NCBI GenBank assembly: GCA_964019335.1
Contig: OZ025699.1
Coordinates: forward strand, 434,001-498,000
Origin: Diplonema japonicum
Taxonomy: Eukaryota > Protista > Euglenozoa: Diplonemea
Direction of reading: 5' to 3'
DNA length: 64,000 nt
The notes beneath the pieces were generated by a model. That model saw nothing but the letters and a program-made list of their open reading frames with translations. It was not told where the DNA came from and did not search any database. The translations under genes and the position numbers were made by a program. This document shows, in pieces, positions 17,996 to 62,008 of the stretch; the stretch's first letter is position 1; every line of letters starts with the position of its first letter.

Positions 17996-18200
17996 CATCT
18001 TCGCCACCCACTCCACGCACGACAAGCTGATGGAACTGAAAGCCGCTTACAAGCGAGACCGCATCACACGACTCCGCAAGACGCTCAAGGCCTCGATTGG
18101 AACGAAAGCAATGCTCCAGAAGGGGTGTATAAATAGATAGCCCCCCCCAACCCACCCAAGGGCGGCCCTCCATGAGGGGGTTTGTCCTGCACTTTGAGTT
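17996..18200 (+). mobile_element. 5'-truncated copy of the non-LTR retrotransposon 3' end
   Basis: Near-identical to 58803-59007 (one substitution seen by eye). TTATTCC occurs on both sides as a candidate target-site duplication. Confidence 0.93.
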
Positions 18201-49628: not shown

Positions 49629-50075
49629 AAGGCATAGAAGAGAGACATAGAAGAGGGGGTTTTACTTTTTACAATCAAAAAGAAAGGGGGGAAATAACAT
49701 GAAGAGAGAAATGAAGAAGAAGAAAAAAAAAGGAATAAAAAGAAATTTTTAAATAAAAACCCCGCTTTCCTCCTGCTTTCCTCTTTCATTTACATTTTTT
49801 ATTTTATTTTTTTTTTGAGCACAGGATCCCGTTTCGTATTCTTGTTCTGTTTTATGCAAGAGGGGGTTCTTTTACAATCCTCAAAAAGAAATTTAATTGT
49901 CCTGGCAAAGTAAAAAAAAAAAAAAATGTATGGGACTTATACAATAAAGGGGAGAAGAAGAAGAAAAAAAGGGAGTGGTAGTGCCTTCTTCTCTTCTTTA
50001 CCCATTTTTTTTTTTAAAGCAAATTCTTTTGATTTTGTGCTTAGTGAGCCTTCAACCACAGGTGATCCAACACAG

Positions 50076-50115
<40 letters not shown>

Positions 50116-50878
50116 CCACCTTACAGCCTACATAGGAAGGAGGAAGAGAACACAGAGGGAGGAAGTGGGAGGGGCGGGGGAATCTTCCCCCCCCTCTCCC
50201 TTGCCTTAGTTCCTTTCTCTCGGCACTTCCATATTGATTTCTTTTTTTTTTTTTTTTTTTTTTTTCTTGTTTCAATTTCAATTGTATTTACAATTCCTTC
50301 CTGGATTATCCATGAACGAACCAAAATCCCTATCTACATGATTTCCCCCCCTCTTTTTTATTATTATTATTTTGTTTTCCCCTCCCCCATTTTGTTCCCT
50401 GTGAAGCTTTGGACATTTGAAGCAAGAGACACGTAATGATACCACAAGGACCCTGCTTTGTGGTACATTCCGTTGGCATTCTTGCCTACTCCCCGGATTG
50501 GATGGAAAAAGAAATAAGAAAAAAAAAAGAAAAAGGAAATACAACTGCAATCTGCTTGCATCTTCCCTTTTTTTTTTGTTTTGATTTTTTGAAGGCAGAA
50601 AAATTAAAATAAAATAAAATAAAAAGATGATGAACAAGAGAAGGGGAAAAAAAAAAGAAAAAAGAAAAAGTAAGGGTGTGCGTGCCAACCCTCTTTTTCT
50701 ACCTTTCTCTCTCTTTTATTTCTCCCCTCCCCCCATTCTGAGCCCAGTCCTCAGGAAATATACAAAGAAAGAATTATTCATTAAAAAAAAACCTACCTCC
50801 CTTCACTTCCTTTCAATCTGCATATTCCTTTTTTTTTTCTTTCTTTTTTTCTTTACCCACTTACTTCCATGCCTAGCT

Positions 50879-50919
<41 letters not shown>

Positions 50920-51408
50920 AGAGGAAACGAGAAGAAAAAAAAAAGAAGAGGCAGTACCCCTGCCTTGCCTTTTTCTCTTCTTCTTTTTTTTTTTTTTTTT
51001 TTTTTTGTTTGTGAGACAAGACAAGTCACAAGCAGCAGAGAAGTATATGCCCATTCCACGTTGAACATTACTTTTGCCCAAGAGAAGTACTCCTTGAACC
51101 ACCCAAGCAACTGGGGAAACTTCAAAAGTAGGGGCGTAAAATATAGTTGCCCTGGAGGGGGGGGGACACTTAATATGGGTGGACACCCCCCCCCTTTTTT
51201 TCGCCTCATTACTCCAGATCTTCGACAAACCTGTAAAAGAAAAAAAAAGCAAAGTTTTTCTGATAAAACCGACACTCCTTTCTTGGGCAAGGGGCATTCT
51301 TCTTGTTTTTTTTTTTTTTTTTTTTTTTTTTTTCGTTGACTTTCTTTCACGCTGCCCTCTTTTTTTTTTTTTTTTTTTTCCATTTTAAAAGATTCGATTC
51401 TTAAGAAA

Positions 51409-51439
<31 letters not shown>

Positions 51440-51449
51440 ACAGATTTAT

Positions 51450-51501
51450 GTATTTCGTTTTTCTTTGTCAAAAAAAAAAAAAAAAAAAAAATTATTATCA
51501 G
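51450..51501 (+). other. Candidate 52-nt poly(A)-filled intron in the 5' UTR of the U-box gene
   Basis: GTATTT...(A)~22 TTATTATCAG, the same architecture as the kinase introns. No reading frame is available to validate it. Confidence 0.4.
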
Positions 51502-51512
51502 GTAGGGGAAAG

Positions 51513-52220
51513 ATGAACAATGAAAAGCTTGGAAGGATCCTTCAAGAAATCTTCGGCGACAAGTTGAACCGTGTCGGTGGCGGCAGGTGGATGGCTCTGC
51601 TTGAGGATGGCTTAAAGTTCCAGTGCATGACTGACGAAAGGGCAGACAGAATGCGTTTTATCGTACCGGTGATGCCCGTGGGTGGCGCACCCAATGAGTT
51701 CCTCCAAAGGCTGCTCCAAGCAAGCTTTCACTCAGCACTGGACGCAAGATACGCAATAGCCGATGGCCTTGTATGGTCATGTTTCATCCACCCCTTAGGA
51801 AGCCTTACTGAAAGCTTTGCTAAAGATGGTGTAAAGCAGGTGCTGAAGCTAGCCCACACCACGGGTTCTACCTATTCTAGTTGTGATTTGGTTTTTGTAG
51901 GATCCGTGGAAAGGGGTGAAGCACCCAAGGCGAGAAAGACGGCTTCGGAAGCTTTTGAGGCCGCTGTACAGACTCTCAAGCCGGAGGTCCTGAACGCACC
52001 GCCTCATCTTTGCGATCCGCTGACTTTTGAGCTGCTTCAGGACCCGGTTCTGATCCCTTCCGGGCACACCTTTGAAAGGGCCACCATTATGGAGCATATT
52101 GCAAGGTTTCACAACAATCCTTTCACCAGAGACCCGCTCAGCGTGAGCGACCTGACGCCCAACAGGGCCATCCAAGAAGCGTTGTCGGAGTGGTCTGGGT
52201 CGAGCGAAATGAACCGGTGA
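51513..52220 (+). CDS. Bacterial CesT/YbjN-like chaperone domain fused to a U-box (putative E3 ligase)
   Basis: N-terminal DRMR..LLQASFHSALDARYA..WSCFIHPL..TYSS; C-terminal PPHLCDPLTFELLQDPVLIPSGHTFER..PFTRDPL..LTPNRAI. Confidence 0.85.
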   Translation: MNNEKLGRILQEIFGDKLNRVGGGRWMALLEDGLKFQCMTDERADRMRFIVPVMPVGGAPNEFLQRLLQASFHSALDARYAIADGLVWSCFIHPLGSLTESFAKDGVKQVLKLAHTTGSTYSSCDLVFVGSVERGEAPKARKTASEAFEAAVQTLKPEVLNAPPHLCDPLTFELLQDPVLIPSGHTFERATIMEHIARFHNNPFTRDPLSVSDLTPNRAIQEALSEWSGSSEMNR

Positions 52221-52222
52221 TG

Positions 52223-52256
<34 letters not shown>

Positions 52257-52258
52257 CC

Positions 52259-52297
52259 AACCAACGATTCTAAAGCTACAGTTTCTGTACTTTATTG
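52259..52297 (+). other. SL: Complete 39-nt spliced-leader (mini-exon) sequence
   Basis: AACCAACGATTCTAAAGCTACAGTTTCTGTACTTTATTG has the euglenozoan SL length and the conserved CAGTTTCTGTACTTTATTG 3' half. The AACCAACGAT start is the diplonemid type as I recall it. Confidence 0.93.
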
Positions 52298-52504
52298 GTG
52301 TCCGACCGTGCCAATAAAGTTCACACAGCAACGGTTTGAAAAGAAAATACAAATATTGGAAGTTGAAGCGCGACACAGATCAGCAACGTAAAGGAGAAGA
52401 GAAGAGAAGAGAAGAGAAGAAAAATCGAGTCATATCAGATCATATCAGATCATATCAGATCACAGCAAACACATTGACAATCTAAGCTACCGCGTCAGTC
52501 TAAG

Positions 52505-54737
52505 ATGGACGTTCACAAAGCTTTGAAGGGGTACGGGATGACAGCCCGCGGGAAGGGGTACCGGATTGGAAACGGAAACTCCTTCTACGGAGTGGTCGGA
52601 GAGAAGACGGGAAAGAAGGGGAGCGACGTTAGGCGCCGCATGATACAAGAGCTGCGAGGAAGCGAGGAGTACCGGGCGAGTGTCATCGGAGACTACGACC
52701 TGTACTGCTCCCAGCACGCCAGGGAGGGGACCGCCGCGGACCCGGTTACCATCCAAGCCACCGCCCGCGCACTGAAGACCGACATCCACCTGATTACGGC
52801 CGACGGCGGCGCCCTCATCGTCTCCCCTATCGTGGGAGAGTCCAAGTCCAAGAAGCAGCCCATCCACGTCGCCTTCGACGGCCGGGCATACCTCAACGCC
52901 ACGGAGCCGTTCAACGTGAACGTGCTGAAGAAAGCTATGCAGCAGTTCAAGCTGCCACGGGTCGGGATTCCAACCTCAGACGGAGAGGCGAAGGCATGGA
53001 GGGGACCGAACAGCAAGCCACCACGGAAGGAACCGCAGGCAAAGAAATGCTGGCTCCTCGAGCAGGGACAGTTCGACCTACCCTTCATAGAGTGGGAAGA
53101 GCTGGTGGCAGGAAAAGATGGCATAGCCATCGCGACCGAGGTCAACGTGGAGGAGGCAGAAAAGATGTCCTGGGACGGGAACAAGGCAGTCCTCCTCAAC
53201 GCAACGGCAAGGGTCGATACGAACACGACGTCGTGCTCAAGGCGGCTGGAGAGTACTCGAACAGGACAATGTTCTTGCACGTACTGAGCGGAAAGATCTC
53301 GCGCTCTCAAAAAAACAAAAACACGGTGGGTATTGACCTGGCCGCGATGTACACGCGGGTAGCTTTCGTCGTCTCGAAGACGCACACCCCAGCCCAGACA
53401 TGGGAGAGGGTGACCTCCGAACCCCGGAAGCTGGTCCAGGAGATGCTGGGCTGTAGAACGATCCACAGGATCGACAAATACGTGGATGGACCGGCCCCAA
53501 GGGTTGACGTGCTCGTCACGATCGCAACCGAGAACCGCCGCCGCCTCGTAGGTGCATCCGGGAAGATGGGGGTCTTCGTCAAGCCGAAGGACGTGGAGAA
53601 GTCCCCTGTCGCCTGGCTCCCGAAGGAGATCACTCTGGAAGAGGCACTCGAGCTGGCGGAGACTGAGAAGCAGGGGTTAGCGCTGCGCGAATCCGACGGC
53701 CGTCTCGGGGTGAGGACATCGGAGGAGAGGAAAACCACGCTCCTCGACAAGGTATTAGGCGAGGAGGAGCGACAACGCGGGCAGCATGGGGAGCCCAGGT
53801 GGCGTTTGTCGGGACTGTACGGGCAGTGCGGAGCCGAACACGTTGAGGCGATACTCGAGGCGATTAAGTGGGAGGCCACGGCGGATGGTGCAACAGCATG
53901 AGGTGCTGGTACATCCGAGGGGGCGAACCCCCAACCACGTCACTGAAGATCACGTCCCCAACTGGGCGGGTCCTCAACTGCAGGATAGCTCCCGACGTTA
54001 GAAACCGACCCGCCAAAAAGACACCGCCAGCTCAGTCCTGGGGAAGGCCGAAAACGGGGACCACAAACAACGCGGGCAAGTCGTACCTCGGAGCAGTGAC
54101 GGGGTCCTCTCAACCAGACCACAAACCACCAGCTTCAGGAAAGAAGGTTGCCCCTGCGGGTAAAGCCGCCCCACCGAAGTCCGGTAAGTCGCCCACAACA
54201 TCGAAGAAAGCCGATCCCCCGGCCTTTGAGGACCGCCTCACAGCAATCGAAAACGCACTTCGTAAACTAGCAGGGGAACCGGTCAGCGACGTCAAGCCGC
54301 CGGCTGAGGTGGTCAGTCTACGGAGGGAGAACGCGGAGCTACGGGAGGAGGTCCGGCAGATGCACATCCAGATGGCCGCGCTCACCGAGCAAATTAAGAG
54401 ACTCACGGAAGCGACGCTCTCGAAGCCCGTCCCCGGGAACCGGGCCCCGATGATGCGCCCTGCTGCCGGGGAGGAGATGATGGACGACTCCGAAGATGAC
54501 TTGGGTCCCCCCCCAACTGACGATGACACCGACATCGACCTGGACGAGGGCCCCGCCGACATTGACGACTGCCTGGGCAAGGGCATCTGCCACGTCTACA
54601 ACGGGACATATCAATGCTGGAAGGGTGTATGCCACTACTGCGGCGGGAACATCACAAAGAGCAACCCAGCACAGACCTGCATATTACCAGACTGCAAAAG
54701 GGTAAAATGCCGCGGGTGCGAACAATGCGAACAATGA
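52505..54737 (+). pseudogene. Retrotransposon ORF1 (OTU-like N-terminus, coiled coil, Cys-rich C-terminus), two frameshifts
   Basis: Three overlapping ORFs (52505-53287, 52996-53901, 53868-54737) join by frameshifts near 53215 and 53880. Coiled coil LRRENAELREEV; terminal CHYC..C..C..C..C cluster. Confidence 0.75.
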
Positions 54738-54830
54738 CTCCATGAGGGCTCCCCCCAAACCCACCCCCCAAACCCATTCCCTCCGCCCCGTTCCCATCCT
54801 TCCAAATACAATCCGATACGCTTATCTGAC

Positions 54831-57800
54831 ATGAAATTTGAACGTCTCACCGAACAGGGTATCGAACCCCACCCCGGACCAGAGCCAGAACACGAGAAAT
54901 TCACCATTTTCACACACAACGGCTCATCACTTAACAACAGGCTGAGCGAGTACTCCACCGTCCTCCCGGACGCATTCTGCATCCAGGAGACAGCCCTCAC
55001 GGCTCAGACGCAGCTGGAAATCGAACACGTGCTGAGAGACGATGACTGGGGCAAACGATACGCCAGATTCTGGAGCAAGCCACAGCCAGGCAGGGAGTCC
55101 AGTGGTGTCACATCTCTGACGATAGCGAAAGCAAACGGTGGCTTCACCTGATCAACGTCTACTGCCACTCGGGCCAGGACCAAGCCAAGACGAAATACCG
55201 TGAAGAGCTTCTCCACTACATCCTTTGCCGTCTTAAGTTCGAACTGGGAGACGTGCCTGTGGCCGTGGTGGGCGATTTCAACACGGACGAAGTACGATCC
55301 CCCACGTTAAGGAAAGCTATACAGACAGACTGGGTAGACGCCGCTGCGTTCTGTGCAAGAAGGGATGGTGTGCAGGCGGAGGACACGTTCGTTAGGACCA
55401 ACTGCAGCACGAGGATTGACAGGGTCCTGCTGAATAACATCGCGGCCCAAGGTCTCGAACATTGCGGAGTAAGCGATATGATCACCGGGTCGGACCACCG
55501 ATGCTTGTCGGTGACACTCAACATCCCAGCTTTTCGTCAAGAAGTCCTGAGGTACACCATCCCACAGGAGATACCGAAGACCAAGAAGGCGCCTGGCGAG
55601 GTGGCGAAGGCACTGATGCAGAAGTCGAGGTACCGGGAGTTCATAGCAGCACAGGAGCCCACCGAAGCTTTCTCGGAGATATCAGACCTCGCAGAGGAGT
55701 ACCTATTACATGGGTACAAGGGGCCGACGCGCAGCGTGTACACCGGGAGAGGCAAAGTACGGGAACCTACGAAATCGGAGCTAAGTGCGAGGTCGGCGGA
55801 GTCGGCGGTCGGAGCGGCATCGAACAGACAACAAAGACTGGAAAAGCTGAAGCACAAGATCCGCAGTGCGCAACAGCAAATGCTAAGGCTTTATGAAAAC
55901 GGACACTGCGGTCCGCTGCCGGTAGAGTTACGGAACGTCCTCAGAAATATTGCGACACTAGGAGAAGAACTGAAGGTTGACAACTGCCAGGTGGACGCGA
56001 CAGGGGGTATCGACGGCATCAGGGAGGAGCTGGACATAGCAGAGGACTTCGCTCAGGGAATGCTATCAGAGCTACTCCAATACCGCAAGAGAACGCAGAC
56101 GAAGGCCTACGAACGCTCAGTCCGTGCTGACTTTGGGAAAGAACGCAAGCACATCACAGCCTGGGTCAGAGACCGCCCAAACCAGAGAACGGACGTGGTT
56201 GAGGTAGCAGACGGAGGGGTGACGGCGAACCTACAGGAAATGGACAAGGTGATGCGGAACGCGTGGTCGGGCGTCTTCTGTGCGCGAACACCCGAGGAAG
56301 AGCCACAGTATGAGCGGTTTGCACAACGTTACGGGGACCTGATCAAGAAAGCCCCAATGGCACGGACTCCCATCACAGCAGAACAGCTGAGGGAAGTGAT
56401 CAGGAAGAAGCCGGAGAAAGGAGCATGTGGCGTGGACGGTTGGCGGATGAGTGAACTGAAGCGTCTCCCAACGAGCATCCTGAAGGCTTTCGCAGACCTC
56501 TTCAACCTGATCGAGGAAACAGGCCAGTGGCCGAGACAGATCACGACAGCACTGGTGTCCCTGATTCCGAAGGGTGAGGGGTCAGCACCACTGAATCATC
56601 GTCCCATCACAGTGACCAGCACCATCTACCGCTTGTGGGCGTGTACGAGGCTGAAGGGTGTCTTGACTGGCAAGAACGCTGGATCACGCCGAGACAGCAC
56701 GGGTTTCGACCCAAACACAGTACGACAACTGCCCTCATGGAGTTATGTACCAAGCTGGAACTAGCTCTGGTGGAAGGAGAACCGCTGGAAGGACTAGCCC
56801 TAGACTTTCGGAAATGCTTCGATCTAGTGCCACAACGGCTGTCTCTCGACCTCATGGACGCCCTGGGGATGGACCAATCCATAGGGAGAGCACTCCAAGG
56901 GATGTACACCCAAATCACAAGGAGGTTCAAGTACCCCATAGGAGTGGGAGAAACATTTGAGACAACGAACGGAATTCTCCAAGGATGCCCCCTGTCAGTC
57001 ATCGTCCCCTGTCAGTCATCGCCCTGTCAGTCATCGCCCTGTCAGTCATCGCCCTGTTGTCCATCATGGTGCGGGCAGTCGAGCAAGTCGCGCCAGACGC
57101 CGAAGTGCTAGCCTACGCTGACGACGCATACCTGCTGGCAAAGCTGCGTGGCTCACTACAAGCTGCGGTCAATGGGACATTGGAGTTCTGCGACCTGACG
57201 GGGATGGAAATCAAGAGAAGACTGTTGGTTTCGGCACTGCTGAAGATTTCAAGTCGAAAGTCATAGGAAACCGAACGGAGATGAGGAAAGGCTTGGAGGT
57301 CGCGGTACCCTACAAGACGGTGACAGACCTCTGCGGACTGGGGGTGAAGATCAACAGACGCAGGACAGGAACGACGTGGAACAAACCGACCACGGGGGCG
57401 CTTGGCTCGCTGGACCGACTGGGGGGCACAAGGATTGCTTTCGAAACCAAAGCACACTTGGTCAGCACGACGGTCCTGCCATCTTGCCTATACAGTGGGC
57501 CGTTCTCCCCTCCATGTGATGAGGCACTCAAGAAGCTAACGACGAAGATCACTTGTAACCTGTGGGGCCCTCATCACCGTGGACGGTCGCCCACCGCGGT
57601 AAACACAGTCCTGCTGAAGGGGCACACCAATGACCCCCTTTCCTACGTAATGTACCACTCCCTGAAGGTAGTATCCGGAGCACTCGATGACAGTCGGCTA
57701 CGGCAGAGATGCATACAGATCGCTGCGGGGTATGACGCGGGTTCCATCCCGATGGGGCCGGTTGGCAACCTGGTCTGCCGGTGGCTTCCCCGAATAGGAT

Positions 57801-58947
57801 GGAGTTGGGCGCAGCTACTAGGTTGCAACACATCTTGGGCCGAACGCGGACACATCTTTAGAGAGGTGGTGAGGAAGGCCCGAAGTAGGACGCTGGCGGT
57901 CGAGAGGAGCACGATAAGCGGGATAGAGCCGGGGGCGGACCCCAAGACGAACCGATTATGGAGGACGGCCAAGGACCCGCTCATGTCCTACAGCCTGAGA
58001 CGAGTGATCGCAGGAGGGGTTCCCTACCTAAACCCGCACGCAAATGCGAAGCGAAAGAGCGTCCCACTGGCGCCTGAAGGTGACGACAACGGTGACGACG
58101 AGGAGAACATGGGCCAGGCACCAACGACGGAGGTATCGCACACGCAAGGATTCAGATGCGACCTGTGCAAGTCTCCACACCCGGACACGGTGACCTTACT
58201 CCGCCATCAGCTGTATGAGTGCGCCTGTGCACAAGAGGAACTGGCACTAGACGGAATGGAGCCGTTGCGCAACAGATCAGGATGGCCCCTATGTCTGGAG
58301 CTGCACGCGATACTGCCGAGGGGGCATGTCTTCGCACACCTGGAGAAGCTGCAGCAGTACATGGCTGTGGTGGTCGGGAAACGGGATGTGGAGCTCATGC
58401 AAATAGACAACGCCAGCACACAGCCGCTGCCGTGGGTACGCAATGTGGAGGGAAGGAGATGCCTCGTGCCAACGGCGGGGGAGCTCGAAGGAGTGGGAGG
58501 AATCGTCGCAGAATTCTTGAACCCGCTGCTGCAGTGGTTGTCACAGCTACGATGGGTGAAGGAGGACACCAGCTCTGAAGTGTCAGCGGTGGAATTGGCC
58601 ATCGACTTCGAATGGACGACAGGCAAGTTACTGGGAGGTCTGCTGGAAGATAGGGCTCGCAAGATCATAGCACTGATAAGAAAGCTGAACGCGGCATGCA
58701 GGGCACGGAAGAAGCCACGCCCCTTCCCAGCAGATGAACAGAAGAGAGTGAAGTCCCTCATCGCAATAGGTGGGAAGACGGCTATGGGTTCGCCAGGAGG
58801 CCCATCTTCGCCACCCACTCCACGCACGACAAGCTGATGGAACTGAAAGCCGCTTACAAGCGAGACCGCATCACACGACTCCGCAAGACGCTCAAGGCCT
58901 CGATTGGAACGAAAGCAATGCTCCAGAAGGGGAGTATAAATAGATAG
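54831..58947 (+). pseudogene. Retrotransposon ORF2: 2A-like peptide, AP endonuclease, reverse transcriptase, CCHC-like knuckle; multiple frameshifts
   Basis: APE motifs THNG, CIQET, LINVY, VVGDFN, RIDRV, SDH. RT motifs GVDGW, LIPKG, RPITV, QHGFRP, LDFRKCFD, GILQGCPLS, YADD. CDLC..H..C knuckle. Frameshifts near 55140, 56660, 57005, 57250 and 58790. Confidence 0.92.
56990..57051. repeat. Four tandem copies of CCCTGTCAGTCATCG within the RT
   Basis: 15-bp unit with 2 extra nt after the first copy, causing a frameshift just after QGCPLS. Confidence 0.9.
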
Positions 58948-59002
58948 CCCCCCCCAACCCACCCAAGGGCGGCCCTCCATGAGGGGGTTTGTCCTGCACT
59001 TT

Positions 59003-59045
<43 letters not shown>

Positions 59046-59738
59046 CCCCTAGCCCTCGCTTTCTCAATCGATCAAAAAAAAAGTTTTTTTTTTTGATGTG
59101 ATTGATTTTTTTTTTTTAATTATTCGTTCTCTCATTTTTTTTTTACACCCCCTCTTTTTGCTTTTTTTTGAGACTTAAGAAAGAAGAAAAGGGGGGGGGG
59201 GGGGGGGTGAAGAGGATGGGGGGAATTGTGCAAATCTGCTCTCCCCCTGCAAAAAAAAAGAAGAAAAAAAAAACGAGCGAAAAAAAAATTGTTTTCTCTC
59301 ATTTTTACTTTTTTTTTCTCCCCTTTTATTTCCCCTTCCTTCCCCCTTCTTTTACTTTTTTTTGAGACTTAAGAAAGAAGAAGGGCAAGGAGGGGATGGG
59401 GAGAGAACCGGAACATATGCTCAAACAAAAAAAAAAAAAAAAAAAAAAAAACAAAAAAAACATATCTACCATATCTGCAAAACTTCTGCTGCCTCTCTAA
59501 ATCCCCCACTGTGCTGCAGTGAATTTCCCTTCCCCCCCCACCTTTTTTTTCCCCATGCCAAAAAAAAAACGTTACTTTTATTTTTCCTCCCCCCTCCCCC
59601 ATTCGTTTTCCCCCCAGCACCAACACCAAACAGGGTTTTCTTTTGCTTCTTTTTTTTTTCTTCTTTTTTTTTTTTCTTTGGGGGAGGAGAGGGGATTTTT
59701 TTTTTGTCCCCTCTTTGGGTTTAAAAAAAAAAAAAAAA

Positions 59739-62008
59739 ATGGGGCTCACCGACGAGCAACAGGACCTGATGGAGGAGAGCTGGAAGATGGTAAACAGCGC
59801 GGGACTCGACCAGCTGGGCTTCAGGCACTACAAGATCCTGGTGCAGATGGGCGGCGACGAAATCAGAACCATGTTTATGTACACCCATCTGGACAGACAG
59901 CAGAAAATGCTTATATCAACAATGAAATGGATGATGTTCAACGTGAATAACTCGGAAGGGCTGAGAAGGCTAGCCCTATACCACGCGCACCTAAAGGTCA
60001 CCGAAAGACTTTTCGGACTATTTGGAAAAGCCTTCATCGAGGCCATGAAGGAGACGGTGGGTCCTCAATTCGACCTTAAGTACCAAACAGCTTGGGCTAC
60101 TGCTTATCAACTCATCGCCGACTCTTTCGTGAAATTTTTAAAAGTGTATGGGGAACAAGTAACCCGCGCTGCGAAGGAAGAAGAAGAAGTCGCAAAACGA
60201 AATACCTACAACGAGCTACGAAACTATTTTAGAGACGAACGGGCAGAGAATTTTCTCGCCTTGTCGGACAAAGAGGGTTCCGTGTACGTCTCTCAGTACG
60301 AGCGGGAGCAGCTCCCCACATCAGTGGAACAACACGACAGGACCATGTTTCGAAAAAGGTGGTTGGTTCTAAGAGGCAGATACCTTTACATCCAGAAGAA
60401 AGAGAACCAACCTCCTCAAAACATTCTCGACTTGGGCTATTGTTCACTTGAGGACACCTCTACCCCCGGTGGAAGGCTTCCCTCCCCATCTCCCTTTTCA
60501 TTCGCGCTAACCGACGATACCGGCATGGTCACGTATTTCCTACTATCTGGTGACGATGAAAAAGAAGTCTGGGGGCAGATTCTACTCCAGGTCCTCTCAA
60601 GATTTTATTACTTAAGAGAGGCTGTTCCAAGATCAACTGGTGTGTTGTCCATCACCGTGTTAGGCGAAGAACTCATACCGAAAGAATTTTGTGAGGATGA
60701 TTTTGAAATGCTTGTGCTTATAGGTAAAGGGACCTTCGGCAAGGTGTACAAGGTGAAGGAGGTTGCCACAGGGAAGATCTATGCGGTAAAGGTGTTGAAG
60801 AAATCCGCATTGAAGCGCGAGTCGCAGATCACAGACCTGAGAAACGAGAAGGGGATCTTGCTAAACATCTCGCACCCGTTCATCGTGAAGCTGCATGCTA
60901 CCTTCCAGTCGAAAGACCGGCTCTTCTTACTATTCACCTTCCTCAGCGGAGGCGAGTTGTTCTTCCACATCCAACAGTCAGAGTCGTATTTCTCGGTATT
61001 TTTTTTTGGGGGGGGGACCAATGTTTCCAACCTCCCTGTGGTGGTTCCTGGTAATTGTGGTTTGGAGAAACACAAGCGAAAGGGAAACTCTCGTTCTAAA
61101 GCCGTACACGTGGGGAAACCTGAACGGGGGTGGAGAGCCCACCCTACGCGTGGCGCCAGTTAGCATCGCCCTCAACGGAGAGTCCCTTATCCCATTACAT
61201 CGAACAAGGAGGTGGCTTCACCAGGTCAGGCAAGTAGCCTCCCCGCGGCATCGTGCCAGTGAAGCTAGCCTCCCACAACTCTCTAGTTGGTGTTTAATTG
61301 CTTCTGTGGCCCCTCTCCCTATTTCAATTTCCAAGCTTTCTTTACCTCTCCACTTTTACTTTCTACGGGACCACAGGGGACTTGGGAGGCTTCGGGGCGA
61401 AGTTTCACAAGGGTGGCCGCTGTGTCACATACTGCATGGCACCACTAAAATCGAGACAACTTTTTTTTTTTTTTAAAGTCGATGGTGACCTTTAACGTTG
61501 ATCCTGACCTGCTGAGGGTGTGCCTGCTGAGGGTGTGCCTGCTGAGGGTGTGTGCCTGCTGAGGGTGTGTGCCTGCGTCCTTTTGGTGAACTCTTCCACG
61601 TACACCTTGTCAAGCTCCACACGGCCTCCTTCGCCTAAGTGCAGCACCACCATACCAGCATCCGTCAGCACGGAAGTCCCTAGGGATTCTGACTTTATCG
61701 TTTCCCGTCGCATCTTCTTTTCTTGGATCACCATCTTATAATTGTAAAAACCCCCTTTTTTTTTTTTTTTTTTGCTTACGCTCCATATTCGCTAATGTGA
61801 CCCGGCCTATGTCCTAAAAGGATTATAAATAAAGATAATTTGTTTCCCCCTCCCCCCCCCTCCCCCAAATAAAAAACCTTCAGGAAGCCAAGTCTCGTTT
61901 CTACATCGCCGAGACCGCGCTGGCGGTGTCGTACCTCCATGAGAACAACATTGTGCATCGTGATTTGAAGGCTGAGAACCTGGTGTTGAGCGCAGAGGGG
62001 TATGATTG

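Follow-up and report, generated by a model that had tools for sequence, protein, structure and literature searches.

Why should a retrotransposon begin with a complete copy of the leader that its host splices onto messenger RNAs? The question is raised by a 64,000-nucleotide (nt) stretch of the Diplonema japonicum genome (hereafter the window; contig OZ025699.1, or C52, positions 434001-498000), in which positions 52259-59005, between a run of 31 T's (T31) and a run of 38 T's (T38), hold a dead full-length copy, approximately 6.8 kb in length, of a young long interspersed nuclear element (LINE) with an APE-type endonuclease. In Euglenozoa, the cap and the 5' end of nuclear mRNAs come from trans-splicing of a spliced leader (SL), and we know of almost no gene-specific RNA polymerase II (Pol II) promoters in the group. 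An initial annotation had noted that the element starts with an intact SL exon; here we ask what this head is, how it is inherited and how it could be made, by reference to the genome as a whole (62.5 Mb in 132 contigs).

All features of the window described below lie on the plus strand. Positions 52259-52297 read AACCAACGATTCTAAAGCTACAGTTTCTGTACTTTATTG, a leader of the diplonemid type, and are followed by GT; these 39 nt form the 5' end of the element, match the exon of the host SL RNA genes (L063/L188) at every position, and constitute the single SL match in the window, where the chance expectation is 0. They are preceded by CC (52257-52258), a pair of extra junction letters, and by T31 (52226-52256), which is either the insertion target or a duplicated target tract; T-rich DNA lies on both sides of nearly all copies in the T-tract families. 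The intact leader behind T31 and CC, as initially annotated, is thus confirmed by the sequence and by its identity to the SL genes. The upstream neighbour is a U-box-like open reading frame (ORF) with stop codons at 52218-52223. Three public sequencing runs, each with the SL on approximately 1000 contigs at a depth of about 3x10^4, were for that reason taken as RNA, and in these RNA-like runs the 5' untranslated region (UTR) of the neighbouring gene carries the same leader, joined near 51234, which supplies the comparison with the host mRNA leader that had been proposed.

The genuine SL RNA genes are found on contigs other than that of the window, as 352-bp repeats at the end of one contig and at a few further loci, so that the reported absence of an SL RNA array at this locus holds. 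They share a conserved upstream sequence, GGGAGGTT, and a 90-nt intron that has a terminal stem and is followed by a T-run. The element agrees with them through the exon and GT and no further: the 86 nt after its SL resemble the real intron only at the level of shuffled sequence, and upstream of its SL stands T31 rather than GGGAGGTT. The head of the element is therefore not an SL RNA gene. An orphan SL gene lying next to a retrotransposon by chance, which the initial annotation had itself named as the finding that would overturn its reading, was rejected on the same grounds, namely a match limited to the exon and GT and an intron similarity at shuffle level. We likewise give practically no weight to the broader idea that chance adjacency or an assembly artefact created the junction. 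Short-read contigs do stop short of bridging T31, as an artefact would predict, but junctions of the same T-tract/SL type recur at dozens of independent loci with different flanks, which refutes it; in addition, the Diplonema japonicum YPF1604 genome note reports a HiFi assembly (62.3 Mb), if it is the same assembly (PMC13598402).

The leader and its hairpin as a 5' module

Querying the genome with the SL core (SL nt 3-39, up to 2 mismatches) gave 218 matches, compared with 0 for a control sequence run alongside; 9 of the 218 are SL RNA sequences, and exact cores account for 185 heads. The SL core stands at the start of at least five families of LINEs with long ORFs, namely the family of the window and at least four others. 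Among families whose first ORF (ORF1) is 71-74% identical, 47% identical or unalignable, SL nt 3-39 are still 100% identical, and the next 22 nt (nt 40-61), a sequence that does not belong to the host SL, are 91-100% identical; identity drops only past approximately nt 110.

These 22 nt complete a predicted anti-SL hairpin (52286-52321), in which the 3' end of the SL plus GUG pairs with ...GCCAAUAAAGU in a 12-bp stem (dG -12.7 kcal/mol, z -3.6); the real SL RNA has nothing comparable over that span. Copies of the hairpin number 42 in the genome, and all 36 exact 3' arms have the SL ahead of them. A master element lacking the SL and carrying an AG acceptor before GTGTCC was found at none of the 36 exact arms, with a search pattern that barred G at one upstream position. 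Since a hairpin foreign to the host is conserved as well as the SL itself and every exact arm is linked to an SL, the junction is inherited as DNA. We conclude from these sequence comparisons that the SL and the 22-nt anti-SL hairpin form a DNA-encoded, inherited 5' module, which is strongly constrained and common to several diverged LINE families. Of the two origins initially considered, the one borne out, by family copies, hairpin linkage and cross-family identity, is an SL permanently carried as a 5' module; the accompanying proposal to look for full-length copies without an SL returned none among the 36 exact arms.

Some of the other SL-headed families (L062, L066, L067 and L064, at contig ends of C20, C9, C43 and C35, respectively) continue from the SL into GTCGTTCGTG... 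and adjoin (GCAAACCC)n repeats at the contig ends; some are arranged head to tail after A-runs, and L064 has two SL heads 17 nt apart.

How the head could be made

The exact position at which copies begin bears on their template. In a tally of 100 SL heads as listed, drawn from a larger genomic set, SL nt 2 is A in 82, and in these 82 nt 1 is A in 23 (4 of them real genes), T in 26, C in 22 and G in 11; the variability of nt 1 is also seen where the flank is not T. The conserved start of the copies is thus SL nt 2. The initial placement of the element's first base at SL nt 1 fits the window copy, in which nt 1 is an A after CC, but not the family at large. Three promoter-less retro-copies of a complete SL RNA, exon plus intron, also start at SL nt 2 directly after a T-tract (L194, C30:484462-484599; L195, C107:8806-8944; L196, C2:150554-150679). 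A start at nt 2, common to elements and SL RNA retro-copies, would fit run-off of the reverse transcriptase (RT) at a hypermodified first base adjacent to the cap.

Two further observations concern these junctions. Of the 22 heads that have C at nt 1, 16 show an extra C or CC between the flank and SL nt 1 or 2 (CCACCAACG or CCAACCAACG), which may stem from RT stutter, non-templated addition or miscopying of a modified first base. L194 and L195 are fused to one shared downstream sequence and look like chimeric retro-copies.

Such fusions bring to mind an origin of the head from SL RNA itself, exon plus start of the intron, through an RT template switch from LINE RNA to SL RNA, of the kind that yields U6-L1 chimeras, the product acting as an SL RNA mimic (stem-loop, Sm-like site) that gains the SL cap modifications. 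The GT after the SL is that of the gene and follows the SL in just 5 of 81 environmental mRNAs, the anti-SL stem recalls the exon-intron pairing of real SL RNA (TTTATTG...CAATAAA), a conserved GGUUUGA / AUAUUGG block comes next, and SL RNA is retro-copied in this genome, twice into fusions with the same downstream sequence. Against this, beyond GT the head does not significantly resemble the SL RNA intron of today, independent captures are few and so the enrichment of GT is weak, and the body of the element would be lost when a working mimic gave away its SL. We consider this origin improbable.

Trans-splicing of the element's own RNA is the more obvious source of an SL, and it has left traces. 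Two AGs inside the leader, at SL nt 16-17 (52274-75) and nt 22-23 (52280-81), had been proposed in the initial annotation as trans-splice acceptors, and two sibling copies fit this exactly: L013 has, behind its full SL, an SL relic that begins at nt 18, and in L007 the relic behind the full SL begins at nt 24. Across the genome, the first kind is found in 1 head and the second in 7, 8 in all or approximately 4% of heads; the window copy has no such relic. The relics prove that certain element precursors begin upstream and go through trans-splicing before being retro-copied. The element could accordingly be imagined as a promoter-less cistron that is transcribed only within a host polycistron, with the T-tract directing SL trans-splicing, the spliced mRNA serving as template and the SL being renewed in each cycle. 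This would agree with insertion into sense-strand T-tracts in the orientation of the genes, with relics cut exactly at AG16-17 and AG22-23, and with an SL that is 100% host-identical in all families; transposable element transcripts of Hydra, moreover, are often SL-trans-spliced (PMC12220107). However, no AG lies at or before the start of the SL, so an exact single SL joined to GTGTCC is not regenerable by trans-splicing; relics should accumulate if this were the main route; and the equally conserved non-host hairpin, SL-linked in 36 of 36 exact arms, points to a junction inherited as DNA. We regard such a cistron as unlikely. The absence of a suitable AG and the low frequency of relics lead us to suggest that the main template starts at the encoded SL. 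The initial interpretation thus stands as regards an APE LINE carrying a whole SL as a module, and gives way where trans-splicing onto the encoded SL would be the main route by which the exact single SL is propagated.

Two contig joints, 52298>52852 and 52298>57159, were considered as internal trans-splice sites and rejected: each has 20-21 nt of element match followed by unlike sequence, and they likely belong to other mRNAs.

A defined 5' end could also be cut rather than initiated, if a read-through RNA were cleaved at the T-tract/SL border, by a ribozyme of the kind found in L1Tc or R2 or by a nuclease of the host. The co-orientation of the element with host transcription would suit such a scheme, and the first 77 nt of L1Tc, its Pr77 module, contain a hepatitis delta virus (HDV)-like ribozyme (PMC3185411). 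At the head of the element (52259-52400), no Rfam ribozyme family was found at E<=1; the scan of 50000-61000 at this threshold yielded chance microRNA and small RNA matches in low-complexity DNA, and neither an SL RNA nor an HDV-like or other ribozyme at the head. The 122-nt head, furthermore, folds like its shuffles (z -0.29). Processing of this kind is, in our judgement, very improbable.

Overall, we lean modestly toward initiation or precise processing at the SL head in preference to trans-splicing. The SL exon would first have been captured from a trans-spliced mRNA of an element. Thereafter, the template would be an RNA with the SL at its extreme 5' end, this end being generated at the encoded SL's first A's, immediately after the T-tract, through either initiation or precise processing. 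The RNA would resemble a mature host mRNA, with its SL and possibly a hypermodified cap, for translation and stability, and the anti-SL hairpin could mask the SL-GU pseudo splice donor. The endonuclease would nick A/T tracts, the U-rich 3' end of the RNA (...CACUUUGAGUU) would prime on the A-strand, and RT would run off one base before the modified cap-adjacent nucleotide, producing the start at nt 2. Pr77 of L1Tc, a Pol II promoter within the element to which the SL-gene factors TBP and SNAP50 bind, offers a precedent for a LINE-internal promoter that uses SL-gene factors (PMC1874656, PMC8190864).

A stronger version, which we put forward tentatively and hold to be less probable, is that the head is a self-contained counterfeit of a host mRNA 5' end, in which Pol II starts at the encoded SL and the transcript receives an SL-type hypermodified cap without trans-splicing. 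Taken together with this, and no more probable, the T-tract target would provide the upstream context and the gap at nt 1 would be a genomic footprint of the cap. If true, a retrotransposon would evade the rule that euglenozoan mRNA caps come only from SL RNA.

Several points weigh against initiation at the encoded head. The start at nt 2 could equally be the ordinary imprecision of LINE 5' end joining, and the chemistry of the hypermodified cap4 is known from trypanosomatids, not from diplonemids. The conserved upstream GGGAGGTT... of the real SL RNA genes is missing from the element, co-orientation with host genes and an upstream polypyrimidine tract fit promoter-less read-through just as well, and the relic heads show that trans-spliced RNA can serve as template. 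The short-read contigs are interrupted at the T-run and again at the microsatellites of the UTR, and the nature of the runs (RNA or DNA) was deduced from contig content in place of a record.

The element, its copies and their targets

The remainder of the element is that of a LINE in decay. The SL is followed by a 207-nt 5' UTR (52298-52504) with a conserved block, ACGGTTTGAAAAGAAAA..ATATTGG, and with (GAGAA)n and (ATCAGATCAT)n microsatellites (52394-52470), which differ in copy number among siblings and at which short-read contigs break. ORF1 (52505-54737) stops at a TGA (54735-54737) after a Cys-rich end; it has breaks near 53199 and 53876 and, at 52604-52888, a weak match to OTU-like proteases. 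In the 5' ends of seven sibling copies, over which the comparison was made, its frame is open for all 505 visible codons. The boundary with ORF2 (54735-54881) is this lone in-frame TGA, followed 40 codons on by the 2A-like peptide GIEPHPGP (54858-54881), which has HPGP where the canonical 2A has NPGP and lies directly before the endonuclease. This arrangement suggests read-through combined with peptide skipping.

The APE-type endonuclease domain (54882-55600) has a frame break near 55050-55150 and matches Exo_endo_phos at 55247-55498 (E 1.9e-4) with 21.7 bits, under the cut-off of 24.5; in P0001, a transcriptome protein with 64% identity, the same domain scores 25.5 bits. The RT domain (56168-57108; frame breaks near 56661 and 57110) matches RVT_1 (E 7.7e-7), and its nearest solved structure is human L1 ORF2p (E 4e-4); P0001 carries both PF03372 and PF00078, with RVT_1 at E 2e-21. 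The 571 codons of the C-terminal region of ORF2 (57122-58837) contain no recognised domain, with no match in Pfam or the PDB. A 168-nt 3' UTR (58838-59005) has a terminal stem-loop (58966-58995) and ends in ...CACTTTGAG, after which comes T38 (59006-59043), a T-tail and/or target tract. The window copy is split into at least six frame pieces, and the broken ORFs were searched as separate pieces with their frames neither joined nor repaired; relative to siblings and to DNA and RNA contigs, it has small indels near 53199, 53876 and 56661. Homology searches with the element proteins returned four relatives, transcriptome proteins at 64-97% identity, and in a protein-cluster atlas the element falls in generic APE+RT clusters.

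An RT domain, in the window copy as in P0001, and an APE-like endonuclease N-terminal to it, sub-threshold in the window piece and above the cut-off in P0001, place the element among the LINEs, as do truncated copies that share a 3' end and have short target-site duplications. An A-rich or poly(A) 3' tail is absent, all copies ending in ...CACTTTGAG and then T-rich DNA; since the A-tail is not a universal feature of LINEs, membership stands. The 5'-terminal 295 nt occur approximately 13 times in the genome at 89-100% identity and the 3'-terminal 411 nt in at least 40 copies (of 509 candidates) at 97-99% identity, all with the same end. Some 13 5' ends compared with at least 40 3' ends is the usual pattern of LINE 5' truncation, and an identity of 97-99% indicates that the family is young. 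Within the window there is one 5'-truncated family copy of 203 bp (17996-18198; 99.5% identity, TTATTCC on both sides) and, between T-runs, a 45-bp 3'-terminal remnant of a related subfamily (1297-1341). In a DNA-like run, X2, the depth of the element relative to the neighbouring gene is about 264:15, and the element lies at approximately 13-30 times the depth of that gene; each of the three RNA-like runs contains element contigs. Copies that share identical flanks at a distance of 35 kb (L005/L006 and L037/L038/L039, contig C69) represent a segmental duplication that contains the element rather than independent insertions.

The element inserts into T-rich tracts, which flank it at both ends afterwards. 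All copies run from ...GAG into T-rich DNA, T-rich DNA also precedes their 5' ends, and both flanks are T-rich in each of the 7 paired copies; one copy interrupts a (CTTTT)n array, which extends to either side of it. The T-tract that had been thought to furnish an upstream context, perhaps an acceptor, is better described as the insertion target, since it flanks the element at either end. At sites other than pure T, target-site duplications can be read (TTTGTT, TTATTCC), and the flanking T-runs are similar in length within pairs (left/right 31/38, 18/19, ~12/9 and ~17/14), which may reflect either a long duplication or tail slippage. A T-run of five or more is absent from the element, and this was dropped as a sign of T-run termination since host ORFs also lack T-runs of six or more.

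Elements mostly have the orientation of the neighbouring genes: by a crude test, the longest ORF on the downstream flank, 15 are in the same orientation as that ORF, 4 are opposite and 10 are ambiguous. In the window all large ORFs are on the plus strand, as in a polycistronic unit, and T-runs on the sense strand slightly exceed A-runs (41 vs 29). Among several giant ORFs on this strand, one frame is open for 6998 codons (20098-41094).

Comparison with known systems

A LINE headed by an SL is, to judge from the literature on spliced leaders, retrotransposons and diplonemids or euglenozoans that we searched, without a published description, and the genome papers on D. papillatum and D. japonicum make no mention of SL-headed elements; the initial suggestion of a candidate undescribed system is in keeping with this. 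Among 80 loci read in a metagenome search for SL heads, nearly all are ordinary SL-tagged metatranscript contigs and none matches the element proteins. In one metagenome contig, Ga0172376_10022903 (L129; 5448-5530, minus strand), a (TGTTGAAAT)n array precedes a partial SL (AAAAGTTACAGTTTCTGTACTTTATTG) that lies internally, and 24 nt past this SL comes the ATG of a 985-aa ORF with an RT domain whose nearest relatives are R2-type RTs; the contig possibly represents an SL-headed element of another euglenozoan. The environmental mRNAs of two metatranscriptome contigs (L080 and L098) have, behind their full SL, another SL that starts at nt 6 (ACGATTCT...); this could mean that leaders are stacked in other diplonemids, or it could be an artefact of the libraries.

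A LINE superfamily with a DNA-encoded SL, a conserved hairpin guard and a preference for polypyrimidine tracts, the very tracts that organise RNA processing, would represent a new life style for a mobile element in a euglenozoan genome. SL-headed LINEs could serve as a natural tool for asking whether the SL acts in translation, cap modification or initiation. They are also a candidate source of retro-copies, those of SL RNA included, in these abundant marine protists. Their start at nt 2, common to them and to retro-copies of the genuine SL RNA, may preserve in DNA a trace of modification next to the cap in diplonemids.

One parallel is with SLACS, CZAR and CRE, which insert into SL RNA genes within SL arrays, splitting the exon at nt 11/12, and encode a restriction-like endonuclease. 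Both they and the present element are euglenozoan non-LTR (long terminal repeat) elements physically tied to SL sequence. They differ in that the latter has an APE and bears the complete exon as its own 5' end, two points on which the initial annotation had set it apart from these elements; it also carries no SL intron and is dispersed in T-tracts. The exon stands intact between T31, with the protein gene beyond it, and the element body, the SL genes being elsewhere, and the 571 aa C-terminal to the RT show no match to a restriction-like endonuclease or other domain.

U6-L1 chimeras resemble the SL RNA retro-copies L194-L196, as small-RNA copies made by LINE machinery, but they are dead by-products and not a functional module of an element. 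In Hydra, transposon RNAs likewise bear the host SL; there it is added to the RNA, and an SL head encoded in DNA has not been reported (PMC12220107). Dinoflagellate retrogenes carry relict SLs (Slamovits & Keeling; PMC5585692, PMC3229502), a system that shares with ours a genomic SL at a retroposed 5' end, relics truncated at an SL-internal AG under a new SL and the idea of the SL as a promoter motif. A full SL over an AG-truncated relic is seen here in the siblings L007 and L013 and at eight loci genome-wide, the window copy not among them. In dinoflagellates, however, the copied units are host-gene mRNAs with decaying relics, whereas here they are autonomous LINE families with a perfect SL and a dedicated hairpin, in which stacking is rare.

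Similar in organization are L1Tc/ingi, which are also APE+RT LINEs of genomes with polycistronic transcription and trans-splicing and have a short conserved 5' module in several families. They place a 2A-type peptide just ahead of the endonuclease, a position at which the present element has the 2A-like GIEPHPGP, with HPGP for NPGP. The present element differs from them in that its 3' end and target are T-rich, not A-rich, in the UGA that parts ORF1 from ORF2 in frame, and in the nature of the module, the first 61 nt of which consist of the SL exon and the anti-SL hairpin.

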